From assembly GCF_040938485.1 (NCBI RefSeq), contig NW_027271250.1:1302001-1366000 (forward strand): 64,000 bases of DNA, in the 5' to 3' direction. This document shows, in pieces, positions 5,251 through 43,990 of this stretch. The stretch's first letter is position 1; each line of letters begins with the position of its first letter. This DNA comes from Diadema antillarum (lineage: Eukaryota). The position numbers and the translations under genes are program-made. The notes beneath the pieces are model-generated. The model was not told where the DNA came from, made no database searches, and worked only from the letters and a program-made list of their open reading frames with translations.

Positions 5251-5637
5251 CTGCTGGTGTTGTAACTGCTTGAGTTACCACTGGTGTTACCGAAGCTGCA
5301 GGTGTATTCTTTTCTGTAGTGATATGTAGATGTGTAGTTGGAGCTTGAGTGGCCTCTGGTGTTGTGATATTTGGAGGCAACGTGCTGACACTTGATGTAG
5401 ACACATGTGTAATTACAATTGATGTGGTAGTAGGATTATTTGTGGCTTGTGTGGTGACTTTTGTAGTTGGAGGAATTGTCAGCTGGATGCAACCGATTTC
5501 ATCCGAGGCAAATGCACAGTCAGCAACACCATCGCATCGTTGAGTGGCATTGATGCACATTGTTGAATTAAGACACCGCCACTGACTATCCAGACAGTTT
5601 GGTTTCACTGTTGATGGATGAGGATGTGGTGTAGTGC
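1..5637 (-). CDS. SSPO: SSPO-like exon 31 (LDLa 5 followed by >1800 aa Thr/Pro/Ser mucin-type repeats; two frameshifts; continues past window start)
   Basis: Acceptor tttttttttcag|GC at 5637; [36 protein letters not shown], then [10 protein letters not shown] repeats; ORF pieces 2867-5608, 216-2903 and the repeat frame again at 1-~365. Confidence 0.85.
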
Positions 5638-26600: not shown

Positions 26601-29600
26601 GTTGATGCCATCCCACTTCACAAGGAATCCGTTGCCCTCGACAAAGACAAACTTGGAAGACGCCCTTCGTACGATCACCTCACCGTTCGAGTATGGGAGC
26701 AGAACCTCCTCACCATTGACAAAGACAGCTCGTTCCTGCTTCAGGTCAATTGGCGACGTACCATTTACAATGACAGTGGCCGACTTGGTGCAGGTGACTG
26801 TTCGTGATGAGCGCATGTTGCACTCAACATTTTCAGCTAGAACAGTCAGGTATTGCTCAACAAAGTCCTATGGTGAGAGCAAGTTGAGAAAAAAGTTACA
26901 ATAAAACGTTCTTTTATCCCCTCTGAATATCTAGGATTCTCCTAATTACCCTCATGCAAAAAAACAAAACAAAACAACGAAATTTACTTCACCACATGCA
27001 TTTTTCACAGTAACCATTATTATATCATGATATTGCATATCATTACAACATACTTCAAAATTAACAAACCAACTTTACTCATTGCTTTTTGCTCAGTAGC
27101 ATCCTTGACTACTGGGTTGATATCAAGGCTAAATACATGTGGTCCATAAAAGCATGGTCAATTTGCAATGATGGATTTATACATGCATACATTGTTCTTC
27201 GATTTGGTTGCAACGCAGCAATGTGTGAGGAAGGCATTCAACCTTTAAAATGAGTACACTTCCATTCTGAGGTCTTAAAGATGTACTGCAAACTCAGAGA
27301 GACAACTTCTCAGCATGGTGTGTACCTCAACGAGAATGTAGCGACAGCCTCCCTGGAAGTTGTACTGCTTCTTGTCAAAGGTCAGGTAGTGTGGATCACC
27401 GACAGACTGACAGGTCGCCTGGCAGGGGGACTGGTCACAATCCCAAATCCCTCCAAGACATGTGCTGAAAATAACGTGATAAGCTTTCATTGTTTCTCAA
27501 TGAGCACTTCATCAGATTTCTTTTCATTAATTGCTTTCTTGCTAACATGTTCACATTATTGGTATAAATGGAATGTTTGTTGTCAAAACTTTTATAGATG
27601 TATAACATTGAGAGCACAAGGTGCATTTGAGATATACATATTGCAGTGTACCGAGTTTGAAGATGCTTATGGAATCAAATTAATAATCATTACAATAATT
27701 TTGGGATTACACATTGTTTTTCTTTGCATTAACACGACAAAGTACACAATGTAATTAAGCGGTAAAATTATTAATTACCATGCCTATGAAGAATACAATA
27801 TGATGGGTAGGAGATTCATAACTCCTACAAATCTTAAGACAGCATTGGATTAAATCAAATTTTGTGATGAACTTCTTTGGAAACTCATTGCAAATCAAGT
27901 TTGCATTTGTTAAATGTGACTGTTAATTGTTTCTTTATGGTAAGATTTACGTACATGCAAACATACAAAACATTGTATGCAAACACTTTGCAATGTACTC
28001 ATATCTTCCTTGTAACTCGAAAAAGAATGTTATCGAAAGCATTAGATTTTTCAACTCTGAAAGTTGCATTACACATGGATTTCTAAAAAATACTAACCAG
28101 AGGTTACACTTTGACCTGACTGTTCCTCCTGGTGGATACTTCTCCCGATTGTGCACACAGGGGCACTGGTCAGCGGTGATGCAGCGGCCATTGTCCAGGA
28201 CAGTGCCTTCTGGACACTGGCAGCCGCTGACACAGTCCGCTGGGCAGTGTTTGGCCATCTCCACTGGGTCCTGGGCTTCACAGGTTACAGGACACAGTGT
28301 GCTGCAGTCACTGTACTCCATAATGTCTGGACACTGCTTGGCTGGGATAGGAAGCAATGCCAGGTTCAGAGTAGCAGGGTACTTAATTTTCATCTCATTT
28401 GCAGAGAAAATTTCATTTGAATGAAGCAAGTACTGATGAGGTATCTTTGTATCAATTACATTTATTGAGCTGATCAAAGTTCAGTTTCAAGAAATCAATA
28501 TTGAAATTAATGGGAATTAATTACAATTTACATACAGTAAAACGTATTTGCATGACAGTTTTGAAGGGAAACACACTTACTGCAGCTTAAAATGACTACC
28601 ATTTACTGAACAAGTAGAGCATTCACTTCAGGGTCACACAGTGTTACTTTTAACAGTGCACAATAATAATGAATCTTTCCCTCCTTAGGTATATCTCTGA
28701 GGTGTACTACTGTAAGATTTTATACACCATGCTGGTTGACATTATTCTTCAATCATGCAAAATTCTGTGATGTTTGCAAGAGGGATATATGAAAACCATG
28801 TCATCAGCTGATGGTAAACTTTCCTCCTTGTGTCTGATTCAATCATACAGGTAATCATCTTGACCAGTTGAAGACTAGTCCCAATATACTCTGACAAGCG
28901 TCTATCAGAAACATGTACTATAGCTATAATCTAAACCATCTTGTCCTCAATGAGGTAACTTACGGCAGAAATCCTGTGTCCTCCAGTCTAGGACCACACT
29001 CTCCATGGCACACTGACGAGAGTAGGCATTGAGGGAGACACACAGGGCATCCATCATCAGGTCATCTGACTCCCCAAACTGACAGAGATCATACTCACAG
29101 CTCTTCACAAACACTGTCGGGTCATACTGTGTTTACGCAGTAAAGTAAAGTAGGAAAAGAAAAATAAGCATTTATCAGGAAGCAGACACACAATATCTTG
29201 CATCACAGAGCCAACAAAATGTCCTTGCATAAGATTTATGGTTGTTGTTGTTTGTGTTTTTTTTTTGCTTGTTTGTTTCTGTGGCTTGTCCGTTTATTTT
29301 TTTTTTTAGCTTTTTATCCAGTCGAATTTGTAATAAACATAAACTTAAATAACCTGTTTGTTTTTTTAAGTAAACAAAACAAAAAAGTGATAGGAAACAG
29401 TGCAGCTTCAAATGATAATTCTTCATATCAAGCAATATCTATCAAAGAACACTTTCGATGTTATTTGTACTGTGAATTACTCAGCATTAAGCCAGACATC
29501 AGAAATCAGATCATACTTCTGAAAATTTTTTGGACTGTTGCATAAAACAACCATCTATAGGCCAATATCTGATGAGTCATTAAAGACCCGTCGCACCAAT

Positions 29601-32600
29601 GTGGTATCTACTATATAATCACTCCTAAACACAATATCAGGAACCATTTTCAGTCACACTCCTTTTGGAGCTCAATCTACAGAGAAAGCTAGCATAAAAT
29701 ATACATCACTGGCATACGACTCACATCAGCATGACACTGTTGAAACTCGACAGCTTCATTGAGAACCTGACACAGACTCCTGGCGGTCGCAAGGCGAGTT
29801 GGATGAACGTCACAGGGGTGTGTATCAACAATCGCCTGGCATACCTTTCAAGATAGCAAGTGATATTTTAACATATCAAAAAGCTGCTGCTCAGAAAATG
29901 TAATGGTTGAAACAAACTAACATTGTGATCCTGTTAACACCATAATAATATTATTTGATGGAAATGCAGTCATTATGATCAAAGCCCCTGATATTTCTAA
30001 CCAATGAATCAAACAGACAGATATTTTGTCTTCTTTACAACAATGTGCAATTTTGCAGGATCTGCAGAAATTGTGATTTCGAAAAAGACTACAGCTTTGA
30101 AATGAAAACATAGATCCTACTTGGAATATGCTAGAGTACGTAACAACAAGTTTAGTGTCTCCAGGGGAAAAAAAAGTGCTGGAAGACTGAACTGGACACT
30201 GCCTGCACAAGAACTGCAAAGAAAATACACAAATTCACACTTCTCCTTTCCATGGCACAACATGTATTTTTGTACTGTTCATAGATTACCCAGTATTGTT
30301 GGTCATTCATTACCAGGCTTGAACCACAAAGGGTTGTTATCTCTGGCCCATTTTCCTGTGCATACATGAGACTAATAAAATTCACATGGTTTGCATTCTC
30401 TTCTTTCATGTAGAAGTGAAGTGGGGTTTGTTGCATGCAAACAGATATTACCATAAACATTAATGCTGTGTGTGCAGTGTTTGTTTCGGTCTAATCTTAA
30501 CAAAATGGTACCTGTCTTACCTCTCCTGGATATGGAACTTCCCAGGATGTTGCCAGCTGGGCAGGGTAGGAGGCATAGTCTCCACTTCTCATCATCCAGT
30601 CATCTGTTGTCATATACAAAGTGTGCAGAAAGGAGTTATGAATATCATTTCCACTTTTTAACAGTACATTATATATACTCGGCAAAATCATCCTCACAAC
30701 TGAAAAAACAGCTATAATAATTGGAAAGGAGAGTTATTCATTGGTCTTGTCATGTCTTAGAGCATGTTTTGTACTTACAGCTCATATATACAGGATACAT
30801 GTATATTACATGTTTACAAAAATGTTTTCATTCAAAGCACTCCCACACCTACATTGTATTACAGATATGTAGTAGTGTGCTAATCTTTCATTGTGCTTGC
30901 TTTATACTTTGATGGGTATTGCAGATCTTTGTAGGCATTGTATATAGTTATGAAGTTACAAGTAAAATGCAGGAGATCACTGGATGGTGTAATTTCTATT
31001 GTCTTTTTTCCCCCTCCTATTCATGAAAGTACTTAATTTAGTACATATCCTAAAAAGCTTGTTTGGGCTACTGCATTTGGCATTCAATGCAGTAAATAAC
31101 TCCAGCTCGAATAGGACTGTAAACTTGGGGAGAATACAGGGATAATATCATAATACATGTCGCATGAAAAAAGGAGGTGCAATTTCTTTGACACATTATC
31201 CGTAAATGCAGCATTCTGTGTTTGAATTGGGTCAGGTTTGATCCATGCAAATAAACTGCCTTACCACCAAATTCATTAAAAAACTAGAGAAGCACTCTGA
31301 GAGTGCAGACCTCCACCAGGCATGCAGATCATTTCCACCACTAATCTTGTTCTTCCATAGAGATTTTTACCCATACATACTTATAGCATTGTGTGCCGAA
31401 AGTGGCCCGATTTCCCAATATAAAAGCCTTTGTTACATTATAAAACCTCAGCTGCACGGCGCACCTCGCCCTAGTAGAAACCAAAGGTAGAAACCAAAGA
31501 CACTTAAACTACAGCACGCACTCTAGTGCGCGCATGCAAACCTCAAATACACGCAGCCTGAACTCCCAAGTTCATTGACCCTACCTGCCAAAATATCAAA
31601 AATCCTTCATAAATTCCCCCAAAATTCTCGGATCACTACCAAAATTTGATCACCTGTTACTTGTATCATTCTAAAACTTTCCTGCAAGTTTCATCCAAAT
31701 CCGTTTACTACTTTTTGAGTTATTTTGCACAAGGACAAACACACAAACACAAAAACCACCGGTACCTTCCTTGGCAGACATAACAAATGATTCTCTGTAA
31801 TCATATCTTGTTAACTGTTACAGATCTACATGCATATAAAGAGACATAGAACATACTCTCTGGATTGTCATCATACATTCCACAAAGGCCAATTGTGGAC
31901 TCTCTAAGCTCAGCTAGCACAGTGACGTACACCGTCATGTTGGTGTCCCATCGGGCCAGAACACCAAGGGTAGACTCCAGGAAAGTGAATTCTCCTGCCT
32001 TCTTGAGTGAGATGCCTGGAGGGAGAATACAGAGAATGAGAACTCATCCTTTAAAAGTTGTGCATTACTCTGGCCTCTGCAGTCTGAAGTACTTTGGGAA
32101 CATTTCGTCACATAGTACAATGTATGTCATCTGCTTCAAACTATAGGGATGATAAGTAGAGGTAGGTAGAATAATCAATATGGTGGTAAAAAGCTGCCTA
32201 TGAATACTTCCATCAATTTCAGAGCCAAGTAAAGGCACATGACAATTTATGACTACACTGACAAAATGTACCTATCAAACATATAATATACATTTGCCCT
32301 TGTCAAAGATGTCACTCTATAGTTTATAAGAACATGTGGATGAATGCATCTGTCTGTATGGAGCTAATTGTAGGCTAGCAGGCTGCAACTTTGCTCTGGA
32401 CAGATTTCGGATAAGATGAGAATATTTACAGGGATGAAACTGGACAACTGGTTGACAGTGATAGTTTAGTACATGAGTGATTTATGCAGATTGCTGTGAC
32501 ATTAAGCTGTTCCTTCAGAAATGCAGTCCCTAAAGTCAGAAAATCAAACACAAGTCTCTGAATAATTGGTTATGATTGGCTGATACCTGACTTATGTTTG

Positions 32601-35600
32601 ATTGCATCTTTTTATGCGACAGGGCCCTGGATTACTAACATAGGTGCTTGACAAAGGACAAATTTACCATTTTCCATGAAAGGAAATGAGACCATTGGAT
32701 TGTCATTGATGGAGACCATGTTCAGCTCTACTGTGATGACATCTAGCCCCAGGATGAACTCCAGACTCTGTCATAAAAGAATATATACAGCAAGGAAAGA
32801 GAATACAATGTCAAGACACAGACAAAGACATAGAGACTGGGACATGATTCATACTTATTAACATACAGGTTCAGTATGAGACAGAACATTATTGCTTAAT
32901 TCACATCATGATGTCTCCAAAAGGAGTAGGTAGCATAGAATGGGCATCTTGGGCAGCATACTGTTAGACAATCTGTTTTCTCTGACTGACAAATCAATTT
33001 CCCTTTGGCTCATGATAAACAAAGTATAATGCAGAGGAGAGGGCATAAAATGATGCAACAAGGACTCATATATTTCAGATGATATGTAACTATTATAACC
33101 ATCATGTTTGATGCATTTCAGTATTGCAATCATTTCACAACGTACAGCAATCATTTCACAACACCGTTACAATATGCAATTTAACCCAAATCCTGTTATC
33201 ACTAAAAAATGCCCGAATGTCAGAATCTGAAAAGATCATTTACTAACCTTAAGGAAATGAGATCACAAGTAAGAAGGATATGCAGAGATGAAGGTTCATA
33301 TGCAAAGGGCCATGAAGCTAATTCAAAAGCTGTTATGTACACAGAGGCTCATGGCAACATACGTACAGCAAGACCATTAGGAATTTCATTCTGCCCACAT
33401 CTGATTAAACTTACCTTGAAGCATGTAGAAAGGACATCACAGTCCTTGTTCCGGATAGTCACTTGCCAGGTTCCATCCAGGGCTGCAGCCAGGGTGTAGG
33501 AACAGGTTCCAGAGAAGCTATAGAATGTCCCATCAAAGGTCATAAAGTGATCACTACTCCAGGAGGCACATGTTGCTGATGTTCGCAGGGCAAGGGAGTT
33601 GTTCACTGCTGCAGCAACCTCCAGGGGGTGCTGGTGTGGATCAGTAAATGACCATGTTGCTGGCGGTGGTTGGGTTGTAAAAAACTCTGGCTCACCAACG
33701 TCTGTAGGGTAGTCAGACTCCTCATCTTGGGAACCTCCTGCAGATGAGTGGAACAGTGAGATCCAGCTTGGTACAGACAGCTCTGATGCAAGGTTTATAT
33801 CACTTTTTGAGGTGGATATGCCTGAAGTTGGTTTAGACTCTGTCAGTGGGGGGTTTGCAGTTGTGAACAATTCAGTGGGGACGACAAAGGGAGACCACAT
33901 GTCTATCAAAGACCGATAGGTATTTTGGTTGCCTTCAGACACTGACTCTTTTGGTTTAGAATGACTTCCACCTGAAGAGGTCTTTGAACTCTTTCCTGAT
34001 GTGTTATTGCTCTTCTTTGATGACTTCTCTCTAACGGAGTCAGCACTTGAAGACTTCTTTGAGTTAGATTTGCTTGCCTTGCCTGATTTCTTGGAGTCAT
34101 TTTTTCTCCCCTTGGAAGAAGAACCTTCAGATTCCTTAGACTCATTTTTACTGGCATTAGAAGAGTCTTTACTTTCCTTGGACTTGTCTGTGCCCTTTTC
34201 CTTTGAATTACGCTTTCTCTCTTTGGAAGAATTGTCACTCTCCCAAGACCTGTTCTTGCTAGATTCCTTAGACTTATTTCTACTGTGTGTTGAAGTTGAA
34301 TGTTTATCTTCTTTGGACTTGACCTTGCTAGATTCCTCGGAGTCATTCTTACTACCTTTAGAAGAACCTTTACTTTCTTCAGTCTTGTCTTTACTTGATT
34401 CATTCGAGACCTTCCCCTCTTTGGAAGATGAAACTTTCCTCTCTTTGGATTTGCTCTTACTTTTTTCCTCTGAGTTGTTCTTTCTCCCCTTGGAAGAAGA
34501 ACCTTCAGACTCCTTAGACTTGTTCGTGATGGATTCCTTAGACTCACCGTTAGCATCACTAGAAGAGCCTTTACTTTCCGTGGACTTGCCCTTGCTTTTT
34601 TCCTTTGAGTCGTTCTTTCTCCCCTTGGAAGAAGAACCTTCAGACTCCTTAGACTTATTCTTACTGCCTCTGGAGGATGAATCTCTATCTTCTTTGGACT
34701 TGCCCTTGCTAGATTCCTTGGAGTTGTCCTCACTGCCTTTAGAAGAACTTTTACCTTCTATAGTCTTATCGTTACTTGATTCTTTTGAGACCTTCCTCTC
34801 TTTGGAGGATGAAACTTTTCTCTCCTTGGATTTGTCCTTGCTTGACTCCTTGGAGTTATTCTTTCTCCCCTTGGAAGAAGAACCTTCAGACTCCCTAGAC
34901 TTGTCCTTACTAGATTCCTTAGACTTATTCTTACTTCCTCTAGAGGATGAATCTTTATCTTCTTTGGACTTGCCCTTGCTAGATTCCTCTGAGTCATTCA
35001 TACGGCCTTTAGAAGAACCTTTACTTTCTTCAGACTTATCTTTATTTGATTGTTTTGAGTCGACCTCCCTCTCTTTGGATGATGAAACTTTTCTCTCCTT
35101 AGATTTGTCCTTGCTTGATTCCTTGGAGTCATTCTTTCTCCCCTTGGAAGAAGAACCTTCAGACTCCTTAGACATGTTCATGCTAGATTCCTTAGACTTA
35201 TTCTTACTGCCTCTGGAGGAAGAATCTCTATCTTCTTCAGACTTGTCCTTGCTAGATTCCTCTGAGTCATTCATATGGCCTTTAGAAGAACCTTTACTTT
35301 CTTCAGACTTGTCTTTATTTGATTCTTTTGAGTCGATCTCCCTCTCTTTGGATGATGAAACTTTTCTCTCCTTAGATTTGTCCTTGCTTGATTCCTTGGA
35401 GTCATTCTTTCTCCCTTTGGAAGAAGAACCTTCAGACTCCTTAGACATGTTCATGCTAGATTCCTTAGACTTATTCTTACTGCCTCTGGAGGATGAATCT
35501 TTATCTTCTTTGGACTTGCCCTTGCTAGATTCCTCAGAGTCATTCTTACTGCCTTTAGAAGAACTTTCACTTTCTTTAGTCTTATCTTTACTTGATTTCT

Positions 35601-38600
35601 TTGAGACCTTTCCCTCTTTGGAGGACGACATTTTTCTCTCCTTGGATTTTTCCCTGCTTGATTCCTTGGAATCATCCTTTATCCCCTTGGAAGAAGAACC
35701 TTCAGACTCCCCAGACCTGTTCTTGCTAGATTCCTTAGACTTATTTCTGTCTCTTGAAGTTGAATCTTTGTCTTCTACAGACTTGCCCTTGCTAGATTCC
35801 TCCGAGTCATTCATATGACCTTTAGAAGATCCTTCACTTTCTGCAGACTTATCTTTATTTGATTCTTTTGAGTCAATCTCCCTCTCTTTGGATGATGAAA
35901 CTTTTTTCTCCTTGGATTTGTCCTTGCTTGATTCCTTGGAGTCATTCTTTCTCCCCTTGGAAGAAGAACCTTCAGACTCCCCAGACCCGTTCTTGCTAGA
36001 TTCCTTAGACTTATTTCTACTGTCTCTTGAAGTTGAATCTTTATCTTCTTTGGACTTGCCCTTGCTAGATTCATCTGAGTCATTCATATGATCTTTAGAA
36101 GCCCCTTTACTTTCTTTGGACTTGTCTTTGCTTGATGCTTTTGAGTCATTCTCCTGCTCTTTGGAGGATGAAACTTTTTTCTCCTTGGATTTGTCCTTGC
36201 TTGATTCCTTGGAGTCATTCTTTCTGCCTTTGGAAGAAGAACCTTCAGACTCCCTTGACGTGTCCTTGTTAGATTCCTTAGAGATATTCTTACTGCCTTT
36301 GGATGAAGAACCTTTACCTTCCTTAGACTTGTACTTGCTTGATTCCTTCGAGTCATTCTTTCTCCCTTTGGAAGATGAACCTCTATCCTCCTTCGAGCCT
36401 TCCTTATCATGAGAACTGCTTTTGCTATGTTTACTTTCATTTGAGTCAATGTTGCTCTCACTGCTTTTGCCTCGTTTTTCGATCAATGATATAAGATTTG
36501 AGGGTTCAGCATCTAGATTTAAACAGACATATCATGACAAACATATGGAATTATTAAATGATTTAGAGTGATGTAATTCTTTGAACTTAGCATATCCTTT
36601 CAAAAGATATCTAAAGGCACCATCTTCCCTATATATATTTTTTTTCATTTTCAATGCAATATACTAGAAATACCCAAGGGGCATAACCTTATTCATAGTG
36701 GCACTACAAACTCTATTTATATCAGGATATGAAATTAGTACTTTGGTGTTGAGCAAATGCCATATAAAGTATTAATCAAATATCTATTTTCCAACACAAA
36801 ACATAGTATGGTTTTCGATAATAATTTGAACAGAGAATCTATGCATGAAATAGCATTTGTAGCTGACCTTAAAGTGAATTATCTTAAATAGAACTCCAGT
36901 ACATCTGTGTCTAGATATTTTTGTTGTTTCATTTTTTATATTTGTAATTTCTATGGGCTGACGGCATCATGATTGTCTCTCAAGAATGAAAATATACAAA
37001 AACTGAGCATTGATATGAAATTGCTAGTGTGAATGATAAAATGTCTAAAATGCTGAATTTTTAACTATATGAAGACACTGCCATTACATTTTGTAAAAAC
37101 ATAATGAGCCACATGACATACAAAGCTTGGGGTGTGGTAACGTTTACGTGAGAATAAAACCTTACATGCATGTGGGCGTCTGTGTATGTATTGAACTTTG
37201 GTTAGATAATTTAAAGTAGCAATCATCAAAATAATATTTATACATCATGTAATGTACATCCTTGTGATAAAATTCTGCTTTGTCTTGTTTCATACTGAAT
37301 TCCAAAATCCCCATAGACTTAATACATGGGCCACCAGGTTTCCGTATGGAATGGGTTAAGAAACAAATAGAGAACAGCAGATTCAACAATTTTGAGATGA
37401 ACACCACGGGAACTAACACTTAACCAAAAGGGGGAAGTATGCATATTGGGTTTATAATGACTAGTAAGCAGATGATTGAAATGAAATAAGAGGGTTCAAG
37501 AGGGAAAAAGGTTAAGAGAAATAAGAGGGCAAAGGGAAGAGAGAAAGAGGATGAGAAAGAGGGAGAAAGAGAGGGAGAGAGATATGTGACTGGACACAAA
37601 AAATAAAAAGAATGCCAGTTTAGGATACACAAGGAAAACAATTAGCACAGTGGGAAAAGTAATAGCAGTTAAGAACAAAATACATGAAATAGAATATGGG
37701 AGGGTGTAATACACACAGACATTCTACATGTAACATAAAGGCTGAAACTAGAGAAGAAAGTAAACCTAGGGTATCAATATCTTAAAAAAACAAAAACAAA
37801 AGAGCAAAACAAAAAACCAAAGCACTGAACTGTCACAGTAAGACATCCAAGCTGTTGCAGATCTAATATTGACAGAGCTGCCACCTTTCTGCCTGTTTTT
37901 CATTCAAAGGTCTTCAGCCATACTACTTAATTAAATCTTGGATACAGTACACACAGTGTTTACTTACTCAATGGCTGATGTGCAAATATTGATAATTAGA
38001 TTTTGGTAGTAATTATAGGTCAAGGTCATTTCTCCTGGTCCTGTCTATTTTGGTAAATTAAAGATTATTGTAAGCTAAGCTTTTGACCACTGATTTAAAC
38101 TCAACACAAAGGAAAGGCCAGGAGACATATTAGTTTATGGGGATACATGACTTTAATACCAAAATTGTTCCAATCAACCCTCAAGAATGTACAGAAATGC
38201 AAACTCACATGTCAGAAATGCCAAGGACATGATGATGAATAATGTTTCTACAACTTCCATTTAACATTAAAATGGCACAAACAAACAACTTTTTTTTTTT
38301 CAGTCAAATTCAGTGTTCTTGCCCTGGAATCAGAATTTCTGTCATTGGAACAGGGGCAGCCAGTTTGTGTACAAGGTCAATGTTATCTTGAGTTGGTGTT
38401 GCTTAAAGGGTTCAAGAATGGACAGGCAAGCTTTCCAGTATCAATTACTAAATCTGCATCAGTCATGAATGCCTTTAGTACTGACAGCTTGCTGGATGAC
38501 CACCATAAAGACAAAAATATATAATTTGTGGATAGTATTTACCAAAGATTATCTACTTGTTTGTGTTTGGAAGCATCAGGCCTCTCATTTGTTATGTCTA

Positions 38601-41600
38601 CTCTCATAGATGTCTACTCTTAATAATCACACATTAGTTTCTTTCAGGAGAGGTATATTCTCCACTCAACGTTTAATTTCCTCATCACTGTTTATCACAT
38701 TACTGCTGTTTCAAAAACCTTTACATCCTTTTTTTATTTTGGTAATTGCTTACACTTAAACATGGAATATAAGTTTCTGCAGTAGTAGTCAAAAATCTAA
38801 TCTAAAAATGTACATAATGGAAAGATCATTTGGCAGTGTAAAATCTGTTTCTCTTTTTGGGCACTACAATGATATGACAGAAAATAGGACAGATGATATA
38901 GAAGTCACAAATACATTTATATTGGACATCAATCTACCCCAATGATCCCTACACCATACAGAATCACTACATCACTGTGATGGTTGTTCCTGCATTGTTT
39001 AATATACAGGCTTACTATTCCATTTGTTTGCAAAGGAAAGTGATATGCTATCACAGACATGTAAAAGAGGAAACTGCTCTGTGAAGCTCAAAATGTTTAT
39101 TCAGAAAAAAGGATGAATAAAAAAGATGGAGATTGAAATCATGAAATTATGAATACAAAAATGGCAACAGAATGTAAATTGTGCAGACAGATAGAATGGT
39201 AGGTTAGTTATCCACAGCTGCCCTCTGCACCTACATGGTACACACCATACAATGCTGAATGAAAAAATGATAGTTCTTGAATTACACTCTTAAAGTGCAA
39301 TGTAATAATTTACGCTTAAGACATACTTCACCTAAATGGATCTGATTTACATCGTAACCTCTGTTGACTATTTAAAGTGCAAATTTGATTACAAGTAAGG
39401 AAAATGGAAGGCACAGAAAAGCATTCTAGGTAAAATATTCTGTTGTCCTACAGATTTAGCACAGAAGATAATTACACAGCTGCTGTATCATTCCAAGTTG
39501 AGCTGTGAGAACTCTTATCAGCTTGCTATCTTCAGTGTTGACATGGCAACTCACCATCGTCATGGTGATCACCTTCCTGGCCTCCACTCCTCTTCTTGAC
39601 ACTGAAGAGCTCTTCCTTCATGGCCCCAGAAAGCACATCTAAAAAATCACAGAAGTAAGAGGTGTAGGAACAGGTGACATTAATATGTGAACTCACATGC
39701 TTTCTTATATAACAAAACTCATACAAAACTGCACAAGTCAATTTCCAAGCAGACCTCAAAATATGCATTCTGGGGCACCAATGTTAATTTCTGAATGTTT
39801 GTATTTTCTGAGTTAATGGTCCTTCCTCTATACAAATTCGAAATTTGGAAGCACAAAGCTTAATGAAAGTACAAGATTTTGTTTGTTTGTTTATTTATTT
39901 GTTTTTGCAGACACTATTTTTTTTTCTTTATGGTGTTTTCTTCATTGCTCATGCAGGAGGCACACGAAAGTGTACATGATGAATCTACACAAACTCTGTC
40001 ATAATAAAAACGGGAAATTCATTCTTGGCAGTCGTCATAGATACCTAATAAACAAAGTGGTCCTAATGAAAAGTGGGACCCATCTTCTAATAGGACCTAC
40101 AATATTTGGGCCACTTTGCTTTGCTTTGTGTTCAGATATCTCAGCCAATTCAAAACCGATTTTCCCTTTAATTCCATCCTTATGCCATTGCACGACATCT
40201 TGTCATCAGCTCTTGACCTTCAAGACTAACCTTAAATTTGCTTGGTCCTAAAATGAAACCAGTAAAATGCTTCATCAGTTTGTGATTGTACTAAGCTTTG
40301 AGTGAAACTTAGTAATTCTTAATCTTTCCTCTAAATCATCCTTAATTGCAACTTATATAAAATATTGCCATATCATATAACTTTGTATATACGACTCAGC
40401 TTCATCAAAGAACATCATACATTGTAACTAAATTTGATGAAAATCTAAACATTGTTTAATGGTCATGCCCATTACATATGAATTGTACACAGTTCTTTAT
40501 TTCATGTTCTGTTGGGCTACATTCCTTGGGAAGTGATGAGCAGGCAATTTACTACACATTTCACTAGGTAATCATTCAAAACATTACAAAACACTCTTTA
40601 CATCTGCATTCACACTTCGTCTAAAACTTTACATTAATTCAGTCGTACTTTACATGTGCACCCCATTTTCAAGATGCAAGCAGTCATTTGCACTCATTAT
40701 TTCTTAGTAGAGAAGACTTAATACGATTTGCAGTTGGAGGGAAATGACAATCAAATACAGTTTTAACAGCTCTCCAAAACTCTAAGCTCCAAAACTAGTT
40801 TAAAGTAAATGATTGGGTTCAACTTCACCCACAAACACAGACTACTGACATTTTCAAATTAGAGTATGACTAAGAAGGATTCCTGCCATCTTGGCCAGAG
40901 CAATGCACTAAAAACTTTTGGCCCCTTCTCACCTGTAAAGTACTGGCATCTTGCCCCCTGGAATCCAGCTGGACAGGCGCACTGCTCGGGGGCCACACAT
41001 GTCCCACCGTTAGCACAGCCCAAGGTACACACAGCTGGATTGACACAAGAAAATGTATATATGTGAATAAGGCAATAATAATGTATACATTGCAAATATA
41101 CACACAACTATAATTCAAAGATATGTATGTATGTATGTTTGTATGTATGTTTGTATGTTTGTACAAAGTATGTATGTATGTGCATATGTATGTATATATG
41201 TATGTATGGAAACACCCAGAGGATAAAAGTCCATCAGAAGAGTTGATGTCATATATCTACCATACTGAAAACAAATTAACAGCATAGACTTTGCTTTTCT
41301 TCACAGATAACCAATTACTGTCACTTGAAATCAACTAGAACTTCATCAGAAAATGTAAAATTTTACCTGAATAATTATCACAAACTGTAAACATCAAGAA
41401 ATTGTTTTTAGATCTGGCAGATCAATTGTACATAAACAATTCAGTAAAATGCATGGAATCATGTCATCTCAAAACCTACTGCATGCAGGTTCTGAGACAG
41501 GTGTGACATTAATTTTGCTCCTGATTAAAAATAATAACAATAATAATAATAATAAAGAAATTTCATATTTTTATATGATTATTGAGAAAAACTTGGTCTT

Positions 41601-43990
41601 TTAAACCTCATACCAACAGTTGTTTATATATATTCAATAAAAAAAATGGTGAAATGAAGTGGAAAAAACAAATCTTTATCTTCAAGGGACAATACAGTTT
41701 TGGTTGAGATGGGGAATTCAAATTTGAACTTTTTGCGAGATAATCAGAAACCACTTATGAAATGTGAAAAAGCATACAATTCTAAGAGGAATTCAAAGTT
41801 TATTTGACAAAGATCCCTTTTGAAATGGCTGAGATATCCAAAAACAAATAAAAAACAAATTTGTCCTAATAAAAGGTGGGTTCCACCTTTTGTTAAGACC
41901 TCTTGGCTCTTGATATATCTCATTCATGTCAAAACTGATTTTCACCAAATAAACTTTGAATTTCTTTTCGAATGGTATGCTCTTTCATATATTCATAAGA
42001 TGTTTATTCATTATCTCATTCAAGAGTTTGAAACCTGAAGCCCCATCTCAACCGAAACTATATCACCCCATTAAGTGGGTCCCCAAAACATGCAGAGGTT
42101 TACGCATTCAAGTGAGTGAGCAGATGTACCTTCATCACAGAGGGATCCCTGGTAACCTGAGCAGCACTCTACAGTTGGGACAATAGTCTCCTTCTGACCA
42201 GTCCTATTCACAGGGGGCAATGGACAATACATGATATCATTTCATGACTTTTTATCAAATACCAGCCACTGACTGGACAAGCATGATGATCATGTGATGA
42301 TGAAACATCTGATATCAAATAATAGAACAATGATATCACAGTGCAATTGATGTAACACATACTTTAGTCCATGCAATGCTGAAAAAAAAGATGATAAATT
42401 AGAAAAAAAAAATCAAACAACCAGAGCCCCAGCAAGGTTAAAGATGTATAGCATTTCAATCATTCAAATGTGACATTCTGCAGACTCCCTCCCCCACCAG
42501 ATTATATCAACTGGCGCTATTTACATCTACTCTATGATAATCCCAGTAGGGTGTTCACTTCTAAAAACATAGTCTATTATGGAAAGAAATACAATTTATA
42601 AGACAATGAAAATCCAAAGCCTGGTAGAATGAAGAAAAATATAATGTTATCTTTTCAAATTTATGGGCATCTCCAAAGAGTCGGGGCCCTGCAACATAAA
42701 GTGACCTGTAAGTAATCCTCTAATACTTCATTCCAGCTATTTATTTGGGCAGTGGCAATTGATCAACAGTTTTCCATGTAAAGACTTCAGATACATATTC
42801 AATAATCTCTGCTCGAAACATCTAGTATTGAGGGAGGGATGTGCTGGATAACGCTTACCGCATGACTGGACAGAGGGTCACCCCGTCCACTTCATATGGG
42901 GTTGTGTCCTTGTCCAGGATCCAGCCCTCAGATTTGACCTTGGGGTCACGGAGGTCACTGCAGGGTAAGAGGCTGCGCTCGGTCACTTCCTGCTGGACCT
43001 TCTTGGAGCCTTCACAGAATCGCGACCTGGACAAAATATAGAATCCAGTATGGATGCCAGTCATTCCAGACAAGGCTCATTGGATGTCATGAGCTAATAA
43101 TAATAATGATATAATACCTACAATTTTTATAGTGCCATTTTCCACTCTGATTAAATGCTCAAAGTGCTTTACACCAAAGCAAAAAGACTGACAATATATA
43201 CACCATAAAAGAAGATGAAAAAGAAGACATGAAAGTCTGTCTTCAAAACACACTGTCAAACAAATAGGATTTTAGAAGGGAAAGATTGCTTCTTTTTTTG
43301 TTTTCATGGAGATATGTAATCAAATCTCAATCATTTCACTACTCTCTACTACCAGTAAAAAACAGCTAAAGTCAGGTAATTGATTGTTTTGGCCAAAGTC
43401 TTCATAGTTTAAAAGAATGAATGATAACAAGCAGAAATTGGGGAGTACATACCTTTACCTCAATGTTCAATATGAAACATGTGACTTTCAGCTCTTACAC
43501 ATTCTTGATAGCTGGATTACATTCATACTTCCCAAAGGTCTTGCTACAAGCAGTGCACCAATTTGACAGCTAATAATATAAATAGATGTACTGCATAAGC
43601 TGTCATTTATGCATATAGATATTTTTGCGAATGAGGAGGTTACAGATATTTTCACGAGATGTTGTTTTCGCAAATTGACACCGAGGCTATTGTAAGTGCA
43701 CTATTACCCCAGCGCACGGTGACACTTTTCGTGTGTTGTTACTTTCGCGGTCCAACAGTGATTCGCAAAATTCGCAAAAAATTATACCCTCATGAAATTA
43801 ACAGCTTATTCAGTATTTACCATAGTTACTGATATATCGCTAAATTCTGTAAGAACTGCATTAATCAGTGGAAATCACAAAATCAAAGTCATCCAAGAAC
43901 AGACACTTACTCTGCCTGAGCTTGTGGGTGATATCCTCCTAGGACCAGCATGGCGATGGCCACTGGTACACACCATTGCAGGAAGGACAT
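1..43990 (-). CDS. SSPO: SCO-spondin-like secreted glycoprotein gene, 31 exons in window, 3' end outside window (SP-EMI-EGF-SK-rich block-3x vWD/C8/TIL-5x LDLa-PTS mucin)
   Basis: Exons 1-30 total 7468 nt with canonical GT/AG and consistent phase at every junction. Diagnostic matches to vertebrate SCO-spondin recalled from memory: [92 protein letters not shown], an N-terminal EMI domain and LDLa repeats after D3. Corrected ORF would exceed 4300 aa; as assembled it stops at 2867 (~3412 aa). Confidence 0.85.
6720..6869 (-). CDS. SSPO: SSPO-like exon 30 (LDLa 4)
   Basis: [49 protein letters not shown]. Confidence 0.92.
7525..7647 (-). CDS. SSPO: SSPO-like exon 29 (LDLa 3)
   Basis: [39 protein letters not shown]. 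Confidence 0.92.
7824..7928. repeat. DIRS 3' terminal repeat (ITR core plus terminal extension)
   Basis: tcacagtgagagcccgctcaacgcgcgcgcagtcata pairs with 12755-12791; the outer 75 bp pair with the ICR. Confidence 0.93.
8040..8156. repeat. DIRS internal complementary region (ICR)
   Basis: 8040-8114 is the perfect reverse complement of 7824-7898; 8119-8156 is the perfect reverse complement of 12781-12818; the two halves meet in a T11 run. Confidence 0.95.
8255..9238 (-). CDS. DIRS ORF3, tyrosine recombinase (327 aa)
   Basis: Catalytic R (STQRV), K (HLKQ), HxxR (AHSTRA), W (AGWS), Y (KFYDKP); N-terminal SAM-like [12 protein letters not shown]; overlaps end of ORF2 by 16 nt. Confidence 0.95.
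   Translation of the reverse strand: MLQVLKLPFENSGMSSRTVDILAASWRASTQRQYCTYIRKWRKFCTLKKESHLHAKINFVLEFFTHMFYEENLSYSAINSARSALATFLVLEDEQFTVSTHPLLSRFMRGVFQLRPPRPRYSEIWDVNIVFRYLRSLAPANSLSLKQLTMKLCMLLALISTQRVQTLHCLNLDSMILKQSMVSFKVNEHLKQSRPGNFGLDVLLKAYPPDRRLCVVTYIKAYLRRTKEIRGEESHLFISFRKPFKRVTAQTISRWIKEIMTGAGIDTTMFSAHSTRAASSSAANRADAPIPLILAKAGWSKERTFRKFYDKPLQEEGQCLSQLIVRE
9223..11475 (-). CDS. DIRS ORF2, reverse transcriptase-RNase H-methyltransferase-like (open frame 751 codons, no upstream ATG)
   Basis: PVGGRLRHF leader; RT motifs IDLRDAY, LPNGL, YLDD; RNase H TDAS, INYLE, TDN, NTEADR; MT-like IDLFAS and YAFPPF. The ORF-track start at 11088 is a TTG; I traced the frame open upstream to a TAA at 11476-11478. 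Confidence 0.93.
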   Translation of the reverse strand, partial: EIYSSAVPPIQAHGQRWIQPEAISERRLARSWRYIQAFFRPAAAGIQTFSPAHADSPTSSSCAQPGAELLDSNPSQAKHCVTEKVTALPKEVSCRPSSCCGNTQSTHTVQSVFDIEHVDVPLDLPVGGRLRHFSKQWNHITTDPFILDAISGYKLEFQEVYSPPHRGKPPYHYRVGNAEESKIDIEIRKLAEKGVIEECQHVAGEFVSNIFTRPKKNGDIRLILDLSDLNDSLNVQHFKMDNIHTATTLISPGCYLASIDLRDAYYSVPVHPSYRKYLRFVWHEKCWQFKVLPNGLSTAPRLFTKLMKPVFAKLRQAGHLVVGYLDDTLIIGETESQALEAVQATTKLLSDLGFVIHSEKSILKPQQRLQFLGFILDSESMTITLPHEKCQNIRAVCAELLGKQNPTIRQVAQVIGKLIATFPAIQYGPLFYRNLERDKILALKSSKGHFDRPMNLSEASKQELMWWFNNIHCQSAPISRDRPALELRTDASGQGWGATDLSNETGGRWDDQEIVHALNNEINYLEILAAGLGLKSFCGHLHDTHVLIRTDNTTAVAYLNNMGGIKSRACDRAARDIWVWCKERNIWITAAYLPGRDNTEADRRSRHFNDRTEWMLNKKVFTDITKKCGTPQIDLFASRLNKQLPAYVTWLPDPDAVSVDAFTLNWGDLYFYAFPPFCLIPKCLQKIENDKAHGLLIVPNWPTQAWFPRMRRMLKDEPLLIPRHRNLITQPVSGEPHPLHACLDLLCCRF
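11220..12569 (-). CDS. DIRS ORF1, Gag-like protein (449 aa)
   Basis: ATG at 12569; motif [35 protein letters not shown] and LFGDDL as in DIRS1-like gag proteins; first ORF of the element. Confidence 0.88.
   Translation of the reverse strand: MEIPLSAPPQHTAKPVVGGTTSTSALHTAKSVVAMVTTAVHHEPKCSPASIKAPTKKEGNGKTLKKPTKPGLSKKAAPPKEKTDAEVLSRLSELESMFEKVMEILPSQPTRIQQQQLRAGHVGTACTAENHGGVPFGGMDVCATDDSTQARGTLHDDHGGSSYSGDECDFPAAAAGYAPAELTGRPVQVPSFAAKFAVSACVGDPINDELANSTNYLISHCLEEKSMEESAANYPAPSNCPNLLVPKVNPVIWDNVTQTTRSRDVKLQRVQKSLTRGLCAFLQTLPTDLNEAQQDALALLCNANYEMNCLRKELIKPDMNAAYAHLCKPTTPVTAFLFGDDLGQRVKDLKEENRAAFSVVKGQAKRSTHQPYHPYKRTASGGFSRKQYRNAGWLAAGDTSRPFLGQQQRGYRHSAPHTQTRPPPAHAHNRGQSYSTATPAKPNTVSRRK
12755..12818. 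repeat. DIRS 5' terminal repeat (terminal extension plus ITR core)
   Basis: Complementary to 7892-7928 and to 8119-8156. Confidence 0.93.
13634..13750 (-). CDS. SSPO: SSPO-like exon 28 (LDLa 2)
   Basis: [38 protein letters not shown]. Confidence 0.92.
14122..14345. mobile_element. Partial MITE (same family as 41684-42072)
   Basis: Shares tacagttttggttgagatgggg terminus and internal sequence with 41684-41880. Confidence 0.75.
14944..15054 (-). CDS. SSPO: SSPO-like exon 27 (LDLa 1)
   Basis: [36 protein letters not shown]. Confidence 0.92.
15569..15615 (-). CDS. SSPO: SSPO-like exon 26 (47-nt micro-exon)
   Basis: [15 protein letters not shown]; ctttttcag|C and G|gtagga. Confidence 0.85.
16166..16259 (-). 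CDS. SSPO: SSPO-like exon 25
   Basis: [30 protein letters not shown]; phases 1/2. Confidence 0.88.
16765..16905 (-). CDS. SSPO: SSPO-like exon 24 (TIL)
   Basis: [20 protein letters not shown]...[14 protein letters not shown]. Confidence 0.9.
17447..17556 (-). CDS. SSPO: SSPO-like exon 23 (C8)
   Basis: [36 protein letters not shown]. Confidence 0.92.
18320..18484. mobile_element. 165-bp non-autonomous DNA element with CAGGG termini and 7-bp TSD
   Basis: TIR cagggctc(c/g)acactaac; cctactg duplicated on both sides; internal ttttggtggccc repeats. Confidence 0.85.
18686..18813 (-). CDS. SSPO: SSPO-like exon 22 (C8)
   Basis: [42 protein letters not shown]. Confidence 0.9.
19515..19717 (-). CDS. 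SSPO: SSPO-like exon 21 (vWD3 end)
   Basis: [30 protein letters not shown]...[12 protein letters not shown]...HPCR. Confidence 0.92.
20270..20611 (-). CDS. SSPO: SSPO-like exon 20 (vWD3)
   Basis: [28 protein letters not shown]...[16 protein letters not shown]...GLELLWDG. Confidence 0.92.
21322..21368 (-). CDS. SSPO: SSPO-like exon 19 (47-nt micro-exon)
   Basis: [15 protein letters not shown]; ctctag|C and G|gtaatc; phases 2/1 close the frame. Confidence 0.85.
21674..21822. repeat. Fold-back (nested inverted repeats) in a CpG-richer insert
   Basis: acaaatgatgcacaggat / atcctgtgcatcatttgt, ttagtgtaggcgtag / ctacgcctccactaa, ggtatttacaat / attgtaaatacc. Confidence 0.75.
22941..23038 (-). CDS. 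SSPO: SSPO-like exon 18
   Basis: [32 protein letters not shown]; phases 0/2. Confidence 0.88.
23379..23572. mobile_element. TA-flanked MITE (TACTGTA...TACAGTA family)
   Basis: TIR tactgtaaaaccagaaa / tttctggttttatagta. Confidence 0.8.
23740..23929 (-). CDS. SSPO: SSPO-like exon 17 (TIL)
   Basis: [26 protein letters not shown]...CPLTCES...[11 protein letters not shown]. Confidence 0.9.
24440..24677 (-). CDS. SSPO: SSPO-like exon 16 (TIL)
   Basis: [20 protein letters not shown]...[27 protein letters not shown]. Confidence 0.9.
25247..25655 (-). CDS. SSPO: SSPO-like exon 15 (vWD2 end and C8)
   Basis: [34 protein letters not shown]...CLYDVCGC...[13 protein letters not shown]. Confidence 0.92.
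26562..26867 (-). CDS. SSPO: SSPO-like exon 14 (vWD2)
   Basis: [16 protein letters not shown]...[12 protein letters not shown]...[22 protein letters not shown]; phases 0/0. Confidence 0.9.
27326..27464 (-). CDS. SSPO: SSPO-like exon 13 (start of vWD2, GDPH motif)
   Basis: [46 protein letters not shown]. Confidence 0.9.
28098..28341 (-). CDS. SSPO: SSPO-like exon 12 (TIL)
   Basis: [20 protein letters not shown]...[26 protein letters not shown]. Confidence 0.9.
28964..29126 (-). CDS. SSPO: SSPO-like exon 11 (C8)
   Basis: [18 protein letters not shown]...[27 protein letters not shown]. Confidence 0.9.
29725..29844 (-). CDS. SSPO: SSPO-like exon 10 (C8)
   Basis: [40 protein letters not shown]; an alternative acceptor 9 nt downstream is possible. 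Confidence 0.75.
30521..30603 (-). CDS. SSPO: SSPO-like exon 9 (vWD1 end)
   Basis: [27 protein letters not shown]; phases 1/0. Confidence 0.85.
31857..32015 (-). CDS. SSPO: SSPO-like exon 8 (vWD1)
   Basis: [52 protein letters not shown]; phases 1/1. Confidence 0.9.
32668..32767 (-). CDS. SSPO: SSPO-like exon 7 (vWD1)
   Basis: [33 protein letters not shown]; phases 0/1. Confidence 0.85.
33415..36512 (-). CDS. SSPO: SSPO-like exon 6 (3098 nt: Ser/Lys/Glu-rich repeats, Pro/Thr linker, start of vWD1)
   Basis: Open for 1032 codons; acceptor tttaaatctag|AT, donor AAG|gtaagt; ends [16 protein letters not shown]...STCFK. Confidence 0.9.
33950..36470 (-). repeat. Coding tandem repeat: ~270/273-bp (90/91-aa) Ser/Lys/Glu-rich units
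   Basis: Homologous positions at 35171, 35444, 35714 and 35984 (273, 270, 270 bp); sub-repeat SKESSK(D/G)K. Confidence 0.92.
39555..39638 (-). CDS. SSPO: SSPO-like exon 5 (short linker with KKR)
   Basis: tttttag|AT...G|gtgagt; [27 protein letters not shown]; symmetric phase 1, so skippable. Confidence 0.6.
40933..41034 (-). CDS. SSPO: SSPO-like exon 4 (EGF-like domain)
   Basis: [33 protein letters not shown]; phases 1/1. Confidence 0.85.
41121..41210. repeat. (TATG)n microsatellite
   Basis: Imperfect tatg/tttg run. Confidence 0.9.
41684..42072. mobile_element. ~390-bp MITE with long imperfect TIRs, TTAA-like ends
   Basis: tacagttttggttgagatgggg / ccccatctcaaccgaaactata; related fragments at 14122-14345 and ~40050-40260. 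Confidence 0.8.
42130..42203 (-). CDS. SSPO: SSPO-like exon 3 (EMI domain, C-part)
   Basis: [24 protein letters not shown] (EMI CC-x-G-Y-x-G-x-x-C motif); phases 2/1. Confidence 0.85.
42859..43026 (-). CDS. SSPO: SSPO-like exon 2 (EMI domain, N-part)
   Basis: [25 protein letters not shown]...GWILD...LCPVM; cag|G and CG|gtaagc. Confidence 0.85.
43589..43815. mobile_element. TA-flanked MITE in SSPO intron 1
   Basis: TIR tactgcataagctgtcattt / aaattaacagcttattcagta; internal ttcgcg-type motifs. Confidence 0.8.
43911..43990 (-). CDS. SSPO: SSPO-like exon 1 (start codon, signal peptide)
   Basis: [26 protein letters not shown](E), hydrophobic core and AQA cleavage motif; donor GA|GTAAGT, phase 2 fits exon 2. 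Confidence 0.8.

Follow-up and report, generated by a model that had tools for sequence, protein, structure and literature searches.

An apparently echinoid-specific Ser/Lys/Glu repeat block between the EGF and first VWD domains of a SCO-spondin-like gene in Diadema antillarum

Introduction

SCO-spondin-like proteins form polymers of the Reissner's fibre type in chordates and are secreted by the radial glia of echinoderms (PMC10570448), and related proteins with VWD and LDLa domains have been found in the mucus and glues of invertebrates (PMC7333891, PMC4948705). Vertebrate and invertebrate members of this group share an EMI domain, in some cases an EGF domain, three VWD-C8-TIL assemblies and a cluster of LDLa domains. 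Hereby, the EMI/EGF head is connected to the first VWD domain (VWD1) by about 20-90 residues. In zebrafish, a 5-aa insertion in the EMI domain abolishes the fibre (PMC8487547). Here we describe a gene with this architecture in the sea urchin Diadema antillarum, in which the distance between the EMI/EGF head and VWD1 grows to about 1,000 residues. Most of this insert is a tandemly repeated block of 845 amino acids, built mainly from Ser, Lys and Glu and referred to as the S/K/E block. The gene lies on the minus strand of a stretch of 64,000 nt (NCBI RefSeq assembly GCF_040938485.1, contig NW_027271250.1, positions 1,302,001 to 1,366,000), which is called the window in the following; positions without further specification refer to the window.

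Two other kinds of secreted proteins invite comparison with the block. Like the Pro/Thr/Ser-rich (PTS) domains of mucins, it resides in a very large single exon, consists of Cys-free, disordered tandem repeats that evolve fast in length and unit, belongs to a secreted host protein that polymerises via VWD domains, and presumably represents a glycan-bearing brush. In contrast to PTS domains, 48% of its residues are charged, Pro and Thr amount to 0.1% and 1.5%, respectively, and potential glycans would be attached at N-linked sequons, which recur about once in 23 aa. The second kind comprises phosvitin and other phosphoproteins of the Fam20C type, such as caseins, SIBLINGs and sea-urchin phosphodontin. 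Here, the resemblance lies in a Ser-rich, disordered insert that contains basic residues and many S-x-E motifs within a large secreted VWD protein. Fam20C is the kinase of phosvitin and casein (PMC7948968). Phosvitin differs from the block in its long polyserine runs, whereas the block is net cationic before modification, places its sites in a Lys-rich context and has phosphosites that are predicted from the motif.

Results

The block is encoded by a single exon of 3,098 nt (33415..36512, minus strand), delineated by its open frame and by splice signals, namely an acceptor in phase 1 (tctag/AT, the slash marking the exon border) and a donor in phase 0 (AAG/gtaagt). The corresponding minus-strand frame is uninterrupted from 36531 to 33352. 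From 36512 to 33415 the exon encodes, in this order, a short N-terminal linker, the S/K/E repeats, a Cys-free linker rich in Pro, Thr and Ser, and the first 52 residues of VWD1. An earlier, sequence-only reading of this DNA had placed an insert of ~840 aa at 33950-36470, between an EGF domain with its linker and VWD1. Based on composition, motif counts and a subunit profile, we delimit the block to 845 aa (36477-33943, minus strand; exon residues 12-856), and its proposed position is borne out by both flanks. Upstream lies an EGF-like exon of 102 nt with phase 1 at both ends (40933..41034, minus strand; Pfam EGF_2, E 4e-06), while the VWD1 part that closes the big exon (33415..33570, minus strand) is recognised by Pfam VWD (E 1.8e-07) and by tblastn with the relatives P0001 from Strongylocentrotus purpuratus, P0016 from Asterias amurensis and P0015 from Antedon. 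The linker between block and VWD1 (33571..33942, minus strand) is non-repetitive and shows a patchy pairwise alignment with its S. purpuratus counterpart (FTT, TTQPPP and NNSL.LRTSATC). Directly N-terminal to the block, sequence comparison reveals the dibasic motif I-E-K-R (36472..36483, minus strand).

The block consists of 32.2% Ser, 23.3% Lys, 12.5% Glu, 7.1% Asp, 7.0% Gly, 5.8% Asn and 4.7% Arg. With no Cys, one Tyr and one Trp, and with one Pro (0.1%) and 13 Thr (1.5%) in 845 aa, it agrees with the previous description of a Cys-free, almost aromatic-free segment made of S, K, E, D, G, R and N. The longest Ser run is SSS. No Pfam family or PDB relative was matched by the block, and none of its 16-mers recurs elsewhere in the window, which argues against a dispersed repeat or transposon as its origin.

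The recurrence of S-K-E and the placement of most Asn residues in N-x-S, both noted before, are clearly seen in the motif counts. Compared to composition-preserving shuffles, the block contains 72 S-x-E (34.0 ± 4.6 expected) and 50 S-K-E (8.0 ± 2.7 expected), and 37 of the 49 Asn residues are part of N-x-S/T (16.5 ± 3.2 expected); z-scores derived from these shuffles overstate the significance, as copies of a tandem repeat are treated as independent. The sequons follow each other at a mean spacing of one per 22.6 residues. All of the contexts listed earlier (KNDS, MNDS, KNKS, KNRS and KNNS) are found, with N-D-S accounting for 14 of the 37 sequons.

The block is coding in the S/K/E frame. The upstream EMI exon ends with ...GAA G/, and the EGF-like exon reads /CT...ACA G/. 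Together with the AT at the start of the big exon, the final G of the EGF-like exon forms an Asp codon, and thus the frame of the EGF domain fixes the S/K/E frame, which is free of stops for 3.1 kb from the EGF junction into VWD1. Among five full repeat units of 91 aa, the ratio of non-synonymous to synonymous differences (pN/pS) is 0.37 in this frame compared to 1.03 and 0.98 in the other two. Open reading frames of 605, 275, 125 and 90 aa that overlap the block on the plus strand (34001-35818) or in other minus-strand frames (33906-34733 and 35811-36461) were rejected as genes. They are considered by-products of the repeat, because the alternative sense frames show a pN/pS of about 1 and join to no domain.

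With respect to splicing, the sense strand of the block is 65% purine and devoid of polypyrimidine tracts. A single donor-like site is present in the block (34547), and acceptor-like sites with a strong pyrimidine stretch are absent. Transcripts are predicted to include the whole exon. As a side observation, the donor-like CG/GTGAGT at 34547 and a pyrimidine-rich, acceptor-like ...CTGCAG/G at 33737 (minus strand) lie 810 nt apart and in frame. Joint use of the two sites would define a candidate exitron, whose removal would drop the last quarter of the block and some of the linker.

The repeat has two levels of organisation. Tandem Repeats Finder reports a unit of 273 nt in 6.3 copies (87% match) and a subunit of 69 nt in 25.7 copies (65% match). 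In the most regular section of the array (34642..36358, minus strand), delimited by this program and by the alignment of five full units, each 273-nt (91-aa) higher-order unit comprises four 69-nt subunits. A subunit profile built from four seeds matches 37 times, with about 36 genuine copies, and covers 791 of the 845 residues. The subunit measures 22-23 aa, with the consensus opening x-[EK], and each 23-aa copy combines a sequon (N11-x-S13) with two S-K-E motifs (positions 13-15 and 21-23), so that the Ser of the sequon doubles as the Ser of the first S-K-E.

Conservation within the subunit is position-specific. Ser4, Ser6, Ser13, Ser21 and Glu23 are invariant in all 16 full-length ungapped subunits; Lys14 and Glu15 are present in 15 of these, and Asn11 in 13. 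All six Ser codons are present in the block, and for Ser13 TCC (6), TCT (5), TCA (4) and TCG (1) are used with zero replacements. Likewise, codon variation at Ser4, Ser6, Ser21 and Glu23 is confined to the third position. Purifying selection hence maintains Ser4, Ser6, Asn11, Ser13, Lys14, Glu15, Ser21 and Glu23 of the subunit, and the S-x-E and N-x-S motifs coincide with its best-conserved positions.

To characterise the block physically, we computed its charge and hydropathy. The mean normalised hydropathy of 0.254 falls far below the Uversky boundary of 0.443 at the net charge of the block (+71), and the fraction of charged residues is 0.48. This composition suggests an intrinsically disordered chain. 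A kappa value of about 0.125, compared to 0.167 ± 0.016 in shuffles, indicates that opposite charges are finely mixed, and therefore an expanded, hydrated coil is expected rather than self-coacervation. If every S-x-E Ser carried a phosphate with two negative charges, the net charge would become -73, and -91 if S-x-pS priming raised the number of sites from 72 to 81.

Several observations bear on a possible modification of the block. The flanking domains are of extracellular type, and the orthologues P0015 and P0016 open with signal peptides, which suggests that the protein is secreted; its own signal-peptide exon was not located within the window. As to Fam20C, the acceptor motif is present in the 72 S-x-E, with Ser13-Lys14-Glu15 and Ser21-x-Glu23 conserved. 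Two Fam20C genes are known from S. purpuratus and sea urchins (PMC5865150, PMC7948968), and thus a kinase is available in these animals. Judged by its motifs, the block is likely N-glycosylated and possibly phosphorylated.

Other identities were considered for the block and rejected. A glycosaminoglycan-attachment region is not compatible with the five S-G found, none of which has an acidic residue within three positions upstream and none of which forms S-G-x-G. Furin-type processing inside the block would need R-x-[KR]-R, which does not occur. With its single Pro and 13 Thr, the block is also no PTS domain of the O-GalNAc type, and a true PTS array is located elsewhere in the gene (5608-1). 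Finally, polyserine of the phosvitin or Pc3 type, i.e. a Ser content of at least about 50% with long runs, does not apply to a sequence with 32% Ser and runs no longer than three.

The gene can be followed over most of the window, in which its elements are arranged on the minus strand in the 5' to 3' order EMI, EGF, big exon, remainder of VWD1, C8-TIL, VWD2-C8-TIL, VWD3-C8-TIL, five LDLa exons and PTS array. The EMI domain is divided over two exons (43026-42859 and 42203-42130, minus strand; together 42130..43026), assigned by tblastn to residues 30-85 of Asterias P0016, by the motif CC.GY.G..C and by splice sites; a Pfam search with the 56-aa EMI fragment gave no match. The rest of VWD1 is encoded by exons at about 32767-32666, 32028-31855 and 30607-30518 (minus strand), whose junctions agree with the S. 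purpuratus model. The remaining C8, TIL, VWD2, C8, TIL, VWD3, C8, TIL, five LDLa exons and PTS region occupy 1..29847 (minus strand), as deduced from Pfam, translations and collinearity with Antedon P0015.

This collinearity extends over residues 109-1482 of the Antedon SCO-spondin-like protein P0015 (tblastn). A single N-terminal EMI domain, then three VWD-C8-TIL assemblies and finally an LDLa cluster, as found here, are features of SCO-spondin-like proteins, and the assignment of the gene to SCO-spondin in the sequence-only reading stands for this N-terminal architecture. For the gene as a whole the assignment is only partly right, since in the window, other than in SCO-spondin, the LDLa cluster leads into a PTS mucin array of >1,800 aa that runs on directly from an LDLa domain (5608-1, minus strand; identified from translations). 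No TSR, SCOR or CTCK part was detected within the window, whose border at position 1 cuts through the PTS array and leaves the 3' part of the gene outside. The TSR/CTCK part is the defining feature of vertebrate SCO-spondin (PMC8487547), and invertebrate gel-forming mucin-like proteins cluster with SCO-spondins (PMC4948705). The nearest named relatives are called 'SCO-spondin-like', 'hemocytin-like' or 'mucin-like', and 'SCO-spondin-like' is a safe name for the gene.

Two breaks of the reading frame occur in the PTS array when it is compared to its own paralogous repeats. Near 2885 (2860-2910, minus strand) one base is absent, ACATCCCGGTG standing against ACATCCCCTGTG at 4228 and 1487. Near 365 (355-385, minus strand) a 4-nt GAAA duplication is seen which is lacking in eight paralogous copies. 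Moreover, a DIRS retroelement with reverse transcriptase and tyrosine recombinase open reading frames (8255-12569, minus strand) sits in an intron between LDLa exons, in the orientation of the host gene.

An exhaustive HMMER search against 1.84 billion representatives yielded 288 matches, nearly all of them to the VWD N-terminus. The top match, P0001, is the 'hemocytin-like' protein XP_030845697.1 of S. purpuratus, with 69% identity in VWD1; no paper mentioning this accession was found in the literature. In the orthologous S. purpuratus exon (L001:9972 to about 11059), the acceptor is in the same phase (...gacag/AT) and the donor is at the same position, after ...STCYK. The exon likewise places IEKRGK before and FTT...TTQPPP...NNSL.LRTSATC after a Cys-free S/K/E array. 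The array itself differs. It comprises 199 aa in ten 18-aa units, SKENKSGSKESPRHHSHG, compared to 845 aa and a 23-aa subunit in D. antillarum, and is composed of 28% Ser, 19% Lys, 14% His, 12.5% Glu and 4.5% Pro. Its units hardly differ from one another, and no 12-mer is common to the two arrays. The S. purpuratus array contains 25 S-x-E, and all nine Asn residues lie in N-K-S, which corresponds to two S-K-E and one N-K-S per unit. The two arrays are thus separate expansions at one site, each giving two S-K-E and one N-x-S per unit.

Outside the echinoids, the start of VWD1 is found at residue 145-285. This holds for Asterias, Antedon, Anneissia, Glandiceps, Branchiostoma, three fish SCO-spondins, a bivalve and an octopus, whose proteins therefore offer no room for such a block. 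Thus, about 60 residues separate EMI and VWD1 in A. amurensis P0016, and about 20 residues follow the EGF domain in Antedon P0015 and Branchiostoma P0020. The sequence-only reading had anticipated a lineage-specific insert. In line with this, the relatives compared here show differing forms of the block in the two echinoids and none in sea star, crinoids, hemichordate, amphioxus, fish or molluscs. As related proteins have the VWD1 linker without insert, and as S. purpuratus carries a different array in the same exon, the insertion looks echinoid-specific on the present sampling of two echinoids.

The sole non-orthologous match to the block itself is the hagfish protein P0127 (Myxine glutinosa, residues 325-838; 43% identity over about 500 residues, E 1.6e-06), which carries about 40 copies of SSKDKAKESSTSS and has no extracellular domains. 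It was rejected as a homologue and is regarded as a compositional or convergent S/K/E match. The same applies to intracellular acid-basic S/K/E repeat proteins of the Nopp140/treacle type, whose resemblance to the block is compositional and does not reflect homology.

Two side observations concern the orthologues. The dibasic motif that precedes the block is conserved as IEKR/GK in S. purpuratus (L001 about 10004-10015) and as VEKR/S in A. amurensis P0016 (residues 122-125), the slash here following the dibasic pair. In the sea star it occupies the matching position of the linker. I/V-E-K-R could be cut by a convertase-type enzyme and is a candidate processing site near the N-terminus of SCO-spondin-like proteins from echinoderms. 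Furthermore, NCBI splits the S. purpuratus gene (L001; AAGJ06000019.1, 21057904-21082324) into three models of 114 aa (EMI part), 516 aa and 6,845 aa at the repeat exon, the 516-aa 'hemocytin-like' model beginning at an internal ATG 30 nt into that exon. The three models probably represent one gene of about 7,500 aa.

Discussion

In summary, the block represents low-complexity sequence that has expanded in a lineage-specific manner within a giant secreted glycoprotein of a known kind. With a probability of roughly 60%, we favour the reading that it is a translated, echinoid-specific tandem expansion, which turns the EGF-VWD1 linker of a VWD-polymerising, SCO-spondin-like glycoprotein into a disordered, charged spacer of about 1,000 residues. 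According to this proposal, the protein would enter the secretory pathway, where the sequons, about one N-x-S per subunit, would be at least partly glycosylated in the endoplasmic reticulum, and the two S-K-E per subunit would subsequently be exposed to Fam20C-type kinases in the Golgi. Its intermixed charges and very low hydropathy would keep the chain expanded and hydrated. The block may thereby serve as a spacer or brush in the manner of a mucin domain, with Ser, Lys and Glu in the place of Pro and Thr. In this role it would keep the EMI/EGF head apart from the D-assemblies and tune swelling, ion binding and electrostatics of the polymer. Full S-x-E phosphorylation would flip the net charge from +71 to about -73, which we mention, speculatively, as a possible switch.

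Several points weigh against this reading. The two echinoid arrays differ four-fold in length and in their His content (14% in S. purpuratus, 1% in D. antillarum), which is more in keeping with a spacer under loose constraint than with a precise functional module. With only two echinoids at hand, an S/K/E seed inherited from their common ancestor could explain the common motifs without selection, and pN/pS is uninformative for the S. purpuratus units because these are nearly identical. Word-index searches for other echinoid models (with residues 850-1030 of the open reading frame, with P0001 205-516, and with the last repeat plus linker plus VWD) returned none, such blanks being uninformative with regard to absence. 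As to modification, N-D-S is among the least efficient sequons, and the S-x-E sites of the block are surrounded by Lys, which is atypical compared to the classical acidic substrates of Fam20C. With respect to the genes themselves, the three-way split of the S. purpuratus gene by NCBI suggests weak transcript support there, and the two breaks of frame within the PTS array could stem from misassembly or could mark a decaying or truncated gene copy.

A far-reaching version of the proposal is that echinoids, ever since urchins of the Diadema type and of the Strongylocentrotus type separated, independently maintained a 'dual-code' repeat with one sequon and two Fam20C-type sites, in which the sequon Ser of N-D-S-K-E is here at the same time the phospho-acceptor. 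Such a repeat would constitute a brush of N-glycans and phosphates, switchable from strongly cationic to strongly anionic, through which a fibre or gel of the SCO-spondin-like type would be controlled in its assembly or swelling. We regard this version as improbable. An alternative is a neutral runaway repeat, in which slippage and unequal crossing-over inflated an S/K/E seed within a length-tolerant linker, with constraint acting only against stops, hydrophobic residues and Cys, and with the motifs as by-products of composition and common descent. In agreement with this scenario, the echinoid arrays differ in unit (23 vs 18 aa), length (845 vs 199 aa) and His/Pro content and lack common 12-mers, the near-identical S. 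purpuratus units point to recent expansion or homogenisation, and the absence of the block from all non-echinoid relatives implies that the protein does not depend on it for its basic function. It is nevertheless rather unlikely in view of a pN/pS of 0.37 among old copies and of conservation that is position-specific beyond mere composition, as Ser13, Ser21 and Glu23 never vary, their third codon positions being saturated, and Asn11 is retained in 13 of 16 copies. Likewise, one sequon and two S-K-E per unit in two unrelated arrays, and charges that are mixed more evenly than in shuffles, are difficult to reconcile with neutral growth.

The sequence-only reading had proposed an adhesive, Ca-binding or phase-separating module on a fibre-forming scaffold. 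This would be a coacervating phosphoserine/lysine module comparable to sandcastle-worm Pc3, phosvitin or the phosphoproteins of biomineral matrices. The 72 S-x-E (81 with priming) and the predicted charge reversal to -73 or -91 are compatible with this idea, as are the duplication of Fam20C in sea urchins and its presence in the tooth matrix (PMC5865150, PMC2830187) and the occurrence of SCO-spondin-like VWD/LDLa proteins in limpet adhesive mucus (PMC7333891). We consider it very unlikely, since Ser content and run length stay well under those of Pc3 or phosvitin, the single Tyr makes 3,4-dihydroxyphenylalanine (DOPA) chemistry impossible in a sequence almost free of aromatics, and the well-mixed charges disfavour self-coacervation. 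Both the placement of S-x-E among lysines and the share of N-D-S (14 of 37 sequons) argue against it as well. In addition, a full-text search of the literature on SCO-spondin and sea urchins retrieved no adhesive or skeletal proteome that reports the protein, and neither spondin nor mucin is named in a paper on the phosphoproteome of the test and tooth of S. purpuratus. The least probable of the readings weighed here is that the block is missing from the mature protein, because it is spliced out wholly or partly as an exitron, because an N-terminal piece is cleaved off at E-K-R, or because the gene is a decaying pseudogene. The in-frame, 810-nt pair of splice-like sites at 34547 and 33737, the dibasic motif IEKR/G conserved in this urchin, S. 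purpuratus and Asterias, and the two frame breaks in the PTS array could be taken in its favour. Moreover, vertebrate SCO-spondin is made as a 540-kDa precursor compared to 450 kDa in Reissner's fibre, and N-terminal cleavage is suspected (PMC8487547). Against this stand purifying selection in the S/K/E frame and the preservation of the frame between the flanking domains in two species despite unequal arrays, which would be unexpected of intronic or dead sequence. Furthermore, the purine-rich sense strand lacks polypyrimidine tracts, and cleavage at EKR would keep the block on the VWD side.

If the block is only a tolerated expansion, it represents ordinary low-complexity growth in a giant secreted protein. 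If the modification predicted from its motifs is real, nature would provide in the block a compact case of a switchable polyampholyte brush, which is of relevance for biomaterials, and a true dual-code brush would be a new type of mucin-like domain without Pro or Thr. For annotation, the S. purpuratus gene illustrates a practical problem, as it is divided at precisely the repeat exon. The most notable point is the parallel design of one sequon plus two S-K-E per unit across two unrelated arrays. With about 1,000 residues placed between the EMI/EGF head and the D-assemblies, the insert described here alters the geometry of precisely that part of the protein by which polymerisation is driven.

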